Position numbers and translations under genes: made by a program. This document shows, piece by piece, positions 6,127 through 19,241 of a stretch of DNA of 64,000 nucleotides. Source of the DNA: Oopsacas minuta (taxonomy: Eukaryota > Animalia > Porifera); NCBI GenBank assembly GCA_024704765.1, contig JAKMXF010000018.1, forward strand, positions 30,339-94,338. The letters are read 5' to 3'. The first letter of the stretch is position 1. Every line of letters starts with the position of its first letter. The notes beneath the pieces are model-generated. The model was given only the letters and a program-made list of their open reading frames with translations, was not told the DNA's origin and did not search any database.

Positions 6127-13471
<7,345 letters not shown>

Positions 13472-14415: not shown

Positions 14416-16407
14416 AAAAACATAACCACACGCTCTTCAATAATTTCTATCAACTAGTTTAGTAATTAACACCCATTATTTGTTAATTATCATATTCGCC
14501 ATCCACAGCATATGTTCTTAGCAACATCTCTGGTATTACAATATGAATAATTAGATTATAAACTAGTTTGTGTGGTGCTTAGGAATGCTATGCACTAGTG
14601 GGTGATAACAAATTGTATAAGAAAGGAGCCTAAGAGGACAGGAAATTAGAGAACTGCTATCACTGGCTTAGTGCCTAGAATATAAATTAACTATCCCCTG
14701 CTCAAACATTTCTAATATTCTATTAAAGCAAATTAGCTAGAATTTGTAAATATATAATAGGTGTCAAAATATGCAGAAGAATCCCAGAATTATGGAAATA
14801 TTTATATAAATATTCAACTACAAACAGACACTGAAACCAGTGTTATTTATCCGTATAAGTATCACACAATGTAGCTGACAGATACCACATTTCTCATATT
14901 ATTATTAGCATATTTACAGAATAGTTGCATATTTTTTACACCTTTTTAGTGACAACAGAAGTTTGCGTAATTGTTTTATTCGATAATTCCATTAAACCCT
15001 ATATACAAATATTCCTAATGAGCTGATGCTTCCAGTAGCTCTCTTCAAGGATGTTAATTTTACCTTAGCAACTCGTTAACCGCATAGGAATGTATACACG
15101 GCTGATTTCTTTGCTGATATTATACAATGTGGCAATAAAGAGTTAACTACATTCCTGGAATATAATGTACATAATCGTTGCTAGGCAACATAATATCATA
15201 AAAGAAATTCATCAAAGGTTCATTTAAGTTACAGGTGATAGTTCCAATTTGATAGCCACAGGGTTATACAACAAATATAATGTTCAGCAATCTAAGATTG
15301 TGAGAAGCTGTAAGGCCCGCGGGTTCCTAAGATATGGGCGGGAAAGTTGTACCAAGGGGGTCACGGATTAATTAGGATAGGAAATGGGACGGTAGGGTCC
15401 AGCCCTCTCCGCAGATGTTATCCTTACTAAATATAATATCTTTATGATCATGTTAGAGTAATTAATAATCTGGGGAAGGATATACACCAAATTACATGAA
15501 TTACAGCTTCTAGGCGTTAAATGAGATTATTCATCTGTGCATGCCATATGATATCTAATTAATAGCGGGTGATTTAATATATTCCTGAGTGAATAGTTCC
15601 ATATAAGATCGTAACTATCTGGGAGAGGAGCCCACCTTGGACGGTGTAGCAGTAATTCAATAATAGCAGATGCAGTATTTGTATCTTTTGATGTTATATT
15701 TGAGGGGCAATGCTCTTCTTATCTAGCGCTGTTCGAATTAGTTCAGAGTTGTACTTTCCTTAAAATATAGCAATAATTATGTATTAGCCCACAGTGTAAT
15801 TGGATGGAATTAGGTCTTTAGAATATTCTAGAACATCTTTCAAGAGCTGGGGCGTTGGATTACACACGTTTTTACTGTAATTGAATAAATAATATCGAAA
15901 GAATTATGATAAGAGAGGTGTTATCTTTATTGTCTAGTCATATTGACTTACAGATAGTAATAATATATTTAGGCGGGGAAACACCTGCTTTCACGCGGGA
16001 AAAATTGATAAAAAATGAAGATTTGAGGCTGGGAAAATGAAAAATTCTGAGATAAAGTTCAGAAAATTTCCTTCTAATCGATTAAGGACAAACGCAGTTG
16101 CTTAAGATGGAAGGTTACATTCCAACTAACAAACGCGGTAACTATAATACTGTATTATTAAACACCTAGTCTGTAAGGTTAATGTTAAACCATCTATTTT
16201 CAATATATTTTCAATTTCGCAGAGACACAGCTAAACTCTAGACAGCATATGTATGTACAACAACAAGAACAACAAGAACAACAAGAACAACGAGAGGACA
16301 CATTAACGTAGTCCAGCTGAACTTTAAACTAAGGTCTATACAGTTAGTCTAAACATAAGGTAAAGTATAAATAGACGAATATACAACATTCAATATTAAT
16401 ATACAAA

Positions 16408-17838
16408 ATGCTATCTGTTAGTGTAATATTTATAATCCAGGTTATTACTGTATGCTGGAGCAGGTCAATACCTGATGCCACACAACCACCCACATTTAAT
16501 CCGCGGGATCTATGGGATATGCTGAATACAGTAGAGGATGAAGAGAGGACAAAGGAGTACTCAAGGTTCGAACCTGTGTCACAAAGATTCGGTACTTCAC
16601 CTTCCTCATTATATCTAATGGAATTCTACAGATTGATTGGTGAGGATCAGCTGATTGATTCTACTATTAGCACATTCAGTGCATCAACATTTGAAGGTGA
16701 TAAATATATAATATATTCTTAGTTTCAGTAGATATATACACTGATTACGGATAAGTGAACGAATATTTACGCATAATCAGTTCCCTACAATGATTATTCA
16801 GTTGGTATTACTCCGGTTAATACAAACATAATTTGAAAGTCTGTTGGTGTTGGTATTAACGAATTTCTACAGTATTTAATATCCCAGAGATTGCGAAAAC
16901 ACCTTTTAAACAACTCCACTTAATCCGGATAAGTTCCCGTAATAAACGTCTCCAATATTCGTATACAGACACAGATATACATAATTCAAATATGATGACT
17001 ATTGTCTGTAGCTTAATTAGACATGTAAGGTTCTGGTAAAAGCTCTCTCAAATACGTTAATTAATTCAGATTACTTATTGTAAGGATTTTAATGGATTCT
17101 GGCGCCGTACTATTGAAATAGATATGTTATGACCAACACGCAACCATACATATTGCTAATTTACAGAATGCAACTGGTTACATTGTGTGTATTGAAATTG
17201 GTTTTAGAATTAGAAAGGCAAATGCGTTACAAGAATATTTGTAAGCAAATAAGATATTCTATTTCCTACAACCAAATTGGACAGCATATGATGTAACGTA
17301 AACATTTATGAATATGTGTCTGAATATTGTAATCGTATTCTCCTTTCTAGATATAAACCAGCTACGATTATCAAGACCTAATTATCAACACCTCTACAGG
17401 ATGGTACTATCTAAATCTGCTATAAAAGAGCACTACACTGAGGGTACAGACACACAACTGTGGATACCTATATACAACCATGAGCTTATCAGACAAATAA
17501 ACAAAACAAAAAATGATAATTTAAGGGTTTGTATAGCTCAGAAAGATAAGAGGAAGACTCAGTATTGCTACTTCCTAGACACAACACAACTCGACTTAAC
17601 TGAACCAAACGGACACTCATGGATAGGCATAGATATAGCTGAACTAACGAGATTAGAAATGGCATCAGGAAATGACAAGAAACACTTGTATTTATACTTC
17701 TCATTGAGTGGGTGTGTGGCAGTGAATGACAGATGTAACTCAGTAAGCCTATTGGATGATAGTTACGTACAAGTATTGAAACTAGCTAATCCACGTGTTC
17801 CTTTTGTCATAATGACAGATGTGATGTCACTTACTTGA
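16408..17838 (+). CDS. Secreted TGF-beta-propeptide-like protein (258 aa, 2 exons) with no detectable mature cystine-knot domain
   Basis: Signal peptide MLSVSVIFIIQVITVCWS, followed by PSSLYLMEFYR (resembles the PxYMxxLY latency motif), HSWIGIDI (WxxFDI-like) and RVPFVIM (PFLVV-like prodomain end). Exons 16408-16696 and 17351-17838 join in phase (G|AT). ATTAAA at 17864. Confidence 0.6.
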
Positions 17839-18065
17839 TTTGTGTTAAATATACGTTTCGTATATTAAACTTTATAAATAATATAACACTTAAAAAGGTG
17901 TGAAAATCCGTATACAGATGGGTCAGAAATGTGAGGGGGGTATAAGGGTTACTCCCTTGGAGGCTAAAAGGGACCCTATAAGGTCTAATAACTAAATTAT
18001 AAGCTAAATACAATAGTTATAACCTGGATAATGTACATACAATTAGAAGCACTAGGATGAGGGGG

Positions 18066-19241
18066 TCATGTAGATCTGTTGGGATTCTCTGGGGATCTCT
18101 CCCACTCCTTCCACACTAACTGTCGTACTTGTGCCAAGCGGAGAGAGGGATGGGCCTGTCGTAAGAGAGGAAGGTGCTCTCTCTCGAACGTAATGTAACC
18201 AACCTGTGATCTCTTATCTGTAGCCTCGTAGTTAGCACCGTTAAGCACGTGTATAGCTTGATCTATCGATCTAGCATCTCCTGACCCAGGGTCTAGTCTA
18301 TACGAATAATAATAAATCTCAAACCGTATGTAAATAATCGTGTTAGACATTTGAAAGTGTCAAAATCGAATTCTACGTCCCTGTTTACCACAAATTAGCA
18401 GGTGGAAGCTAATCTCTATGATAGTTTGTAATATTGATAAAAAGGTGTGATAATATGAATAATCATATGATATATAAACAAAATATGATCACCTGTTAAT
18501 TGTGTGATTGTAGTTCTCCTGGAGAGGAATATCGGTTACTATGGCAACGGGTTGTTTAGGTGTTGCTGAGGTTATATTTGCTTGGATTTGAGCTTGAGTA
18601 ACCTTTTCAGGGTTTGATTTACCTAAACAATTTTCAACCAATAGAATATCAGCCTACACAGCTGATAAATAATCATACAACAGGACAACACATTTTGTCA
18701 CCTTTTCTTCAAAGTATTACGCGACTATAATTAGCGAACAATTGACACCAGATACAGATATAATGTATATCAGCTGATTAGAATTCGGTTAATACGAACA
18801 CCAACGGACTTAACCTGTAATTCGTATTAACGAGCTTCCATTATAAGCCGGTTACTTAATCGAGCACTTATCCAGAAACAGGGACAAGCTAAGCTGGTCC
18901 CCGATTTGATCCTATTAGCGTAGTCCAGTGTATTTGATATCAGCTGTTCAGATACAATATGGTACATATTGGTACTGACCCTTGGGTTTAATTTGACTAT
19001 CCATCAGTTGATTATCCTCAGCTGCTAATCTCTTTAGCTCAGCTTTCTTACTAATATCATCAAGACGTTTAGCCTCCTTATCTGACTTCCTCTGTAATTT
19101 CCTCTGTGATAACTTATCCTCATCTTGCCAGTAAGCATCCATCCTTTCTTTCTCAATAGCTAAAGAGGCAACTGTCTTCTGGGCAGTCTTCCGTTGTTTA
19201 GCTGCCTCTGCTTTAGGATGGTTGTATTTCTGTTTACGCAT
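18066..19241 (-). CDS. CCDC124: Coiled-coil domain-containing protein 124 (Lso2-like ribosome-binding factor)
   Basis: DAYWQDEDK, KVTQAQI, IPLQENYN, DARSIDQAIHVL and LRLAQVRQLVWKEWERSPENPN match the CCDC124 family across 3 exons. Confidence 0.92.

Follow-up and report, generated by a model that had tools for sequence, protein, structure and literature searches.

The prodomains of TGF-beta and BMP precursors fold, silence, store and target their ligands. To our knowledge, nearly every known example is part of a ligand precursor. A gene on the forward strand of a 64-kb stretch of DNA (the window) from contig C18 of the glass sponge Oopsacas minuta, which encodes the protein LOD99_10100, raises the question of whether a prodomain can be a gene in its own right and what such a product would do. 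The initial annotation of the window had described a 258-residue secreted protein that carries three prodomain-like motifs in order and ends exactly at the expected start of the furin site and cystine knot of a ligand precursor. Here, we report that this two-exon gene is complete, single-copy and expressed, and that it encodes, on strong support, a free-standing TGF-beta-family prodomain with the latency-associated peptide (LAP) fold. The account that we favour on balance couples this free-standing prodomain gene with binding of the sponge's ligands in trans.

Gene structure, transcripts and the C-terminal end

The spliced open reading frame (ORF) gives a product of 258 amino acids (aa) that is, letter for letter, LOD99_10100, a 'hypothetical protein' of O. 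minuta (database label P0001). The motifs PSSLYLMEFYR, WIGIDI and PFVIM are all found in the protein in that order, as had been claimed, and they are kept in five species. The features of the locus are as follows.

16408..16696, + strand: exon 1, aa 1-96 and the first base of codon 97
16697..17350, + strand: intron, GT..AG, phase 1, 654 nt
17351..17835, + strand: coding part of exon 2, aa 97-258, predicted arm-domain beta-sandwich of the prodomain fold
17500..17508, + strand: N-glycosylation sequon N147-K-T, read as N-[KH]-[ST] in 5/5 species
17836..17838, + strand: TGA stop codon, read from the sequence
17864..17869, + strand: candidate polyadenylation signal ATTAAA, 26 nt past the stop, where the initial annotation had placed it
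18066..19241, - strand: convergent neighbour CCDC124, read from ORFs, with PF06244 called at the matching place in the ortholog loci L006 and L008

Exon 1 carries an alpha1-like block, PRxLWxxLxT (aa 32-42), a lasso/alpha2 block, EYxRxxPxSxxxGxSPSxLYLxExYR (aa 51-77), and a beta1-like FSA block. In exon 2, two conserved cysteines flank a basic loop, K-[DE]-[KR]-R-[KR]; this exon also encodes the WIG[IL]D strand and a final strand, VPFVIM (aa 246-251). All five orthologs have a hydrophobic N-terminus of about 18 residues (aa 1-19 in O. minuta), which is a probable signal peptide. Together with the conserved sequon, it points to a secreted protein that is probably N-glycosylated. The gene is present in a single copy in the O. 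minuta genome, for which the assembly has 61.46 Mb in 365 contigs (published genome: PMC10280926).

Four public runs of one study cover the window. Three have a flat, DNA-like depth, and one (X4) is RNA-like, with a depth that is high over the exons and low over the intron, and with no coverage upstream of the start codon of the neighbouring gene. X4 contigs end at 16696 and 17349, and since their loose ends spell the partner exon (at 16696 the first letters of exon 2, at 17349 the last letters of exon 1), the 16696/17351 splice is confirmed. A 417-nt contig from the same run is collinear with positions 17665-18081: it takes in the stop codon and 3' region before running into the end of the convergent neighbour. 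Contigs of this kind are unable to reveal the poly(A) site or the RNA ends.

Two further observations concern the 5' end. A minor X4 joint, 16359|16441 (GT..AG), would excise positions 16360-16440 and with them the start codon. Since no in-frame ATG is present in the upstream exon, the product of RNA joined in this way would be without a signal peptide. We take this joint for a rare or aberrant isoform. An imperfect (AACAACAAG)n-like microsatellite lies at 16253-16296, approximately 110 nt upstream of the start codon, and the read contigs seem to be cut there.

Does the gene nevertheless continue into a growth factor? The initial annotation had cautioned that a weak donor at 17820|17821 (GAT|GTGATG) might lead to a distant third exon encoding the furin site and growth factor. 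A GT does follow codon 253 (D253) in phase 0, as this truncated-model explanation needs. However, the 417-nt X4 contig is unbroken over 17821 and the stop, whereas contigs from this run break at real splice sites. Four orthologs have no GT at the corresponding position (none in 4/4), and all of them stop within a few codons: the stop falls 2-7 codons past PRVPF[VL]I[ML]. The convergent CCDC124 gene lies immediately downstream; its stop is 228 nt from that of LOD99_10100 in O. minuta, so that there is no room for a nearby third exon. Finally, there is no TGF_beta domain on the contig, and the four in the genome are accounted for. On these grounds (X4 collinearity, ortholog stops, convergent CCDC124 and no knot domain on the contig) we rejected the third exon, which we regard as very improbable, and the earlier caution falls.

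The whole-genome scan with the Pfam TGF_beta profile found four domains, all off contig C18, a count equal to the four TGF-beta ligands reported for O. minuta (PMC5684314). Within the window, a local growth-factor hidden Markov model (HMM), built from the genome's four TGF_beta domains, and a knot regular expression detected no significant cystine knot among 1345 ORFs; the best E value was 0.15, on the minus strand. The claim that no plus-strand ORF of the window carries a knot therefore stands. Each of the four ligand loci (L009-L012; contigs C142, C300, C111 and C11) has its own upstream prodomain exons, and LOD99_10100 is therefore a fifth prodomain rather than a detached half of some ligand. 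The ligand prodomain exons were recognised by motif (P-x-F-h-x-x-h-Y, beta1, an AELR-type strand and W-x-x-F-D-I-T); Pfam detects a propeptide in none or few of the four ligand genes.

The end of the protein agrees with this picture. In structural alignments of the models described below, the last residues fall on the final arm strand, model residue 258 on TGF-beta1 residue 238 and model residue 256 on activin A residue 300. The stop thus lies roughly 10 residues short of the furin site position of TGF-beta1 and activin A, and a C-terminal RxxR is found in none of the five orthologs. The protein does end where the furin site and knot of a ligand precursor should begin, and in comparison with such precursors the gene lacks both.

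Probable assignment to the TGF-beta-family prodomains

Two AlphaFold models were used to place the protein. The first, made with the ortholog alignment, has a mean predicted local distance difference test (pLDDT) score of 61.6, with 66-85 over aa 110-230, and helices at aa 32-40 and 65-77. The second, of residues 62-258 alone, has a pLDDT of 56.6, so that confidence was not improved over the first. In both models the first motif falls in the alpha2 helix, the second in a strand midway along the arm and the third in the final arm strand, and both are predicted to contain the arm-domain beta-sandwich with the preceding alpha2 helix and beta1 strand. The candidate straitjacket region, with a predicted helix at aa 32-40 and a proline-containing linker, is strongly conserved; its pLDDT is below 50, and few alignments reach before residue 59.

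Fold searches with these models led to one family. Using Foldseek against the PDB, the top 33 matches to model 1 were all prodomains (TGF-beta1, TGF-beta2, BMP9, BMP10, activin A and myostatin; best E value 2e-5), and the top 36 matches to model 2 were all TGF-beta-family prodomains (best E value 2.4e-6). VIA-align superposed the BMP10 prodomain over 130/143 residues with a Z score of 9.7 and a root-mean-square deviation of 3.4 A, starting at alpha2 (model residue 64). In a scan independent of Foldseek, which covered 48,161 representative chains, six of the seven best chains were the prodomains of BMP10, activin A (two entries), TGF-beta1, myostatin and TGF-beta2. An ESM Atlas shape search ranked inhibin beta C and TGF-beta1 first, and the closest Atlas feature clusters carry PF00688 (scores 0.95, 0.95 and 0.93; 197, 193 and 179 shared features). 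An Atlas look-up with the exon-2 fragment of an ortholog gave no usable match.

Compared with the prodomains of TGF-beta1, BMP9/10, activin A and myostatin (PF00688), LOD99_10100 is alike in its secreted N-terminal alpha2, beta1 and arm beta-sandwich. There are distinguishable differences, however. The first is that its sequence similarity lies below the profile thresholds; the second is that its alpha1 region is short and of low confidence in the model. The third is the absence, after the signal peptide, of the N-terminal cysteine that links the TGF-beta1 LAP to LTBP or GARP.

The sponge's own ligand genes offer a nearer comparison. LOD99_10100 and the O. minuta ligand prodomains share the motif order P-x-x-h-h-x-x-h-Y ... 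h-x-x-F ... L-W-I ... W-h-x-h-D ... P-F-h-h. In the three BMP-like ligand genes a phase-1 junction appears to lie 2-6 residues past the beta1 motif, as in LOD99_10100; the TGF-beta-like ligand gene splices before beta1. These ligand splice models were predicted from the DNA sequence: the phase-1 choice is the only consistent one in L009, and in L010 and L012 it is preferred among several stop-free donor/acceptor pairs. The motif series and the apparent phase-1 intron, as in the BMP-like genes, fit descent from a ligand-type gene.

Several results weigh against the assignment. No sequence method is significant. Pfam gave no match for the full protein (E<=10) or for either exon alone, and a HMMER profile search of 1.84 billion representative proteins returned orthologs and their exon fragments only. 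With hhalign, the probability of a match to the glass-sponge TGF-beta-like family was 0.6%, the aligned stretch being the beta1 region. When the four O. minuta ligand loci were searched as six-frame ORFs, the ortholog HMM reached approximately 5 bits, which is not significant. The models themselves are of modest confidence (mean pLDDT 57-62), with TM-scores of 0.35-0.55, and the remaining chain among the best seven of the structure scan was a chondroitin-sulfate-binding carbohydrate-binding module (CBM) with a Z score of 8.1.

Three other sequence searches were as sparing. The ortholog-alignment profile found only a chance ribosomal protein match among PDB sequences (E value 0.53). A word search with the TGF-beta-like precursor gave glass-sponge orthologs only, and no PF00688-type alignment could be had from these. 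A six-frame genome scan with PF00688 gave nothing and is uninformative, as its controls were silent too. The PF00688 check proposed in the initial annotation fell below threshold: the protein has no match, and one ortholog (P0003) reaches 15.1 bits (E value 0.019; gathering cut-off 25.8 bits), in register with profile positions 132-221. This failure of sequence profiles carries little weight, because genuine ligands of these animals escape PF00688 as well: the O. minuta TGF-beta-like precursor P0009 shows only PF00019 in precomputed Pfam, and the propeptide was undetected in most glass-sponge ligands in a 2017 survey (PMC5684314).

The chondroitin-sulfate-binding chain introduces a different explanation, namely that LOD99_10100 is an unrelated, lineage-specific secreted jelly-roll protein resembling CBMs, whose likeness to prodomains is convergent or a modelling bias. 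Many further CBMs score Z 4-6 and a CBM96 cluster appears in the Atlas at 0.84, which together with the modest model confidence and the lack of significant sequence similarity to any ligand prodomain gives this explanation some substance. Nevertheless, every distinct prodomain representative in the PDB tops the unbiased scan of 48,161 chains, and prodomains alone fill the Foldseek lists as far as rank 33-36. The alignments also take in the alpha2 helix before the sandwich, from model residue 64/65. Moreover, the motif order matches that of the sponge's BMP-like prodomains, with which a phase-1 intron is apparently held in common, and the only weak Pfam match is to PF00688 and is in register. 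A convergent jelly roll is thus improbable. We consider LOD99_10100 to be, very probably, a TGF-beta-family prodomain, and we hold this identity no more firmly because the scores are middling in absolute terms and the modelling is poor over the N-terminal third. The prodomain-like reading first drawn from the motifs is borne out by the fold searches, the language-model neighbours and the weak in-register match of the ortholog, and the structure prediction proposed alongside it put TGF-beta-family prodomains on top with both models.

Conservation among glass sponges and the surrounding DNA

An ortholog is carried by four other sponge assemblies in ENA (loci L005-L008), and further assemblies yielded ortholog fragments. 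The gene order is shared: clathrin heavy chain (-), the LOD99_10100 ortholog (+) and CCDC124 (-), followed by a Ras/Roc GTPase (-) at the three loci where it was called (L006, L007 and L008). We rebuilt the four ortholog gene models. All have two exons, with a phase-1 intron of 59-353 nt at the same codon as in O. minuta, and encode 253-261 aa. Across the five species, one sequon and the cysteines Cys157, Cys169 and Cys218 are invariant, and Cys225 is kept in 4/5. In the fifth (L008, 8001-8405), a tyrosine occupies the Cys225 position, which would leave Cys218 without a partner, or available for a bond between molecules.

Synonymous sites are saturated, with a proportion of synonymous differences (pS) of 0.65-0.90, while the non-synonymous proportion (pN) is 0.15-0.35; the ratio of non-synonymous to synonymous rates (dN/dS) is 0.10-0.16 where computable. 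Purifying selection has kept the gene in at least five glass-sponge-type genomes. These values bear on whether it could be a decaying pseudogene left by a ligand gene duplicate after loss of the 3' half, an idea suggested by an architecture that resembles a ligand precursor cut at the furin site. Given saturated pS, dN/dS of 0.10-0.16, an invariant sequon and cysteines and a single copy, the gene is not a pseudogene, and its early stop is old and selected. The frames are intact in all five species, the intron is conserved, the gene is transcribed and spliced, and recent ortholog copies are excluded by the synonymous saturation. The pseudogene was therefore rejected on its intact frames, the low dN/dS (about 0.1-0.16) and splicing in X4; we give it almost no credence.

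The convergent CCDC124 gene was called or read in all five species, and in each of them its end lies 120-230 nt downstream. Its intron at 18298-18492 in O. minuta is confirmed by an X4 RNA joint, 18297->18493 (CT..AC). A repeat at about 18330-18440, in the CCDC124 region, is seen in the DNA runs as a depth spike with many loose ends. The LOD99_10100 intron contains a dispersed repeat of roughly 135 nt (roughly 16743-16880), which has at least 40 scored copies elsewhere in the genome on many contigs (107 candidates; 72-92% identity); copies lie, for example, at window positions 9916-9976 and, on C11, in the BMP-like ligand locus. The greater length of the O. minuta intron, 654 nt against 59-353 nt in the orthologs, is partly due to this repeat. 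No repeat of at least 25 nt is common to the introns of LOD99_10100 and CCDC124.

The window also contains 16 copies of a CRE-like (cyclic AMP response element-like) palindromic nonamer, TGACGTCAC, where 0.2 would be expected. The same nonamer, followed by CTCACTTA, lies 0-12 nt past the ortholog stop in 4/4 loci (L005-L008), and the last codons of the O. minuta gene (17822-17834) are formed by a degenerate copy, GATGTCACTTAC.

Proposed action in trans and meaning for the TGF-beta family

Conservation is uneven along the protein. Invariant residues make up 52-55% of the alpha1-like, lasso/alpha2 and beta1 blocks and 31-39% of the arm core. In the structures of pro-TGF-beta1, pro-activin A and the BMP9/10 complexes, alpha1, the lasso/alpha2 and beta1 are the segments that contact the growth factor. 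Binding is favoured because the most conserved blocks are those that wrap the growth factor in the solved pro-complexes. The same segments have low AlphaFold confidence when the protein is folded alone, as expected if they become ordered only on a partner.

We propose the following mode of action. The protein would consist of a short alpha1-like helix, a proline-containing lasso, the alpha2 helix, the beta1 strand and the arm-domain beta-sandwich. Once secreted, it would most likely bind, in trans, mature TGF-beta/BMP-like dimers from the sponge's four ligand genes, employing the straitjacket elements that prodomains employ in cis. The receptor sites of the bound ligand would be masked, giving latency or antagonism, or the ligand would be carried. 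LOD99_10100 may thus regulate TGF-beta/BMP signals as a free-standing protein, a function that is plausible from its fold and conservation. Trans binding itself we infer, and we put it somewhat short of an even chance. In the sole co-folding attempt, residues 20-258 were paired with one of the four ligands, the TGF-beta-like growth-factor domain as a monomer; the score of 0.00 is neither support nor counter-evidence and says nothing either way. Against this role stands the fact that each of the four ligand genes has retained a prodomain of its own, so that none obviously needs one in trans.

Cleaved prodomains offer a functional precedent: the myostatin propeptide acts in trans, and BMP prodomains stay bound to their ligands. 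The parallel that we propose lies in alpha1, lasso, alpha2 and beta1, which capture the growth-factor dimer non-covalently and would be used in the same way by LOD99_10100. Cleaved prodomains, however, come from the ligand's own precursor, whereas LOD99_10100 is a separate gene and its binding is putative.

A serious rival, which we judge unlikely, is that the protein is a prodomain homolog with a ligand-independent job, either as a secreted signal or as a matrix or cell-surface binder. Anachronism may work in this way. The nearest ESM Atlas cluster is an arthropod 'protein anachronism' (an automatic Atlas name and annotation) of 352 aa at 0.95, with 197/256 features; PF00688 is annotated in 56% of its members and PF00019 is not listed, which speaks for this rival. 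Drosophila ana is a secreted glial glycoprotein. By automatic annotation, the arthropod protein is similar to LOD99_10100 in size and in being secreted. The profile search of 1.84 billion representatives detected no sequence similarity between LOD99_10100 and Anachronism, and we found no literature tying Anachronism to the propeptide domain. The ligands' retention of their own prodomains favours this rival too, and the conserved basic loop K-[DE]-[KR]-R-[KR] could be a glycosaminoglycan site. Against it, the best conserved blocks are the straitjacket equivalents, which hold the growth factor in known members of the family.

Choanoflagellates bear on both function and origin. They encode the TGFb_propeptide domain alone and have no TGF_beta domain (Richter et al., 2018; PMC6040629), so that the fold can function free of a ligand, as the rival requires. 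Their propeptide proteins are like LOD99_10100 in having no TGF_beta domain in the protein, a likeness of architecture; the profile search of 1.84 billion representatives did not reach them. They differ in that they come from organisms that lack any TGF_beta domain and so predate the ligand, whereas LOD99_10100 coexists with four complete ligands. Instead of a ligand gene from which the growth factor was lost, the gene might be a survivor of an older, pre-fusion lineage of free-standing LAP-domain proteins as in choanoflagellates, an origin that we consider rather doubtful.

The initial annotation had proposed a regulator class with no precedent known to it in early-branching animals. In part this holds: a search for literature on 'prodomain-only' TGF-beta proteins found nothing relevant, and we came across no description of such a gene from sponges. 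The class as such is not new, because free-standing propeptide domains have already been reported for choanoflagellates and are suggested for Anachronism by the PF00688-only 'anachronism' clusters. What we rate as new is a conserved, ligand-less prodomain gene beside complete ligands in an early-branching animal.

The finding has consequences for how the family is surveyed and studied. Glass-sponge prodomains escape Pfam, and pathway counts in early-branching animals that are based on PF00688 therefore miss such genes; domain-based inventories understate the prodomains of glass sponges. With a separately encoded prodomain, just four ligands and no Wnt pathway, O. minuta would offer a simple natural system in which to test regulation in trans. 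The gene also touches on the origin of the ligand precursor, since the propeptide stands alone in choanoflagellates and is fused in animals, and LOD99_10100 is a stand-alone form beside fused ones. If the pre-fusion lineage is true, glass sponges keep an ancestral stand-alone prodomain together with fused ligands, and the partnership of prodomain and growth factor may have begun in trans, between two secreted proteins.

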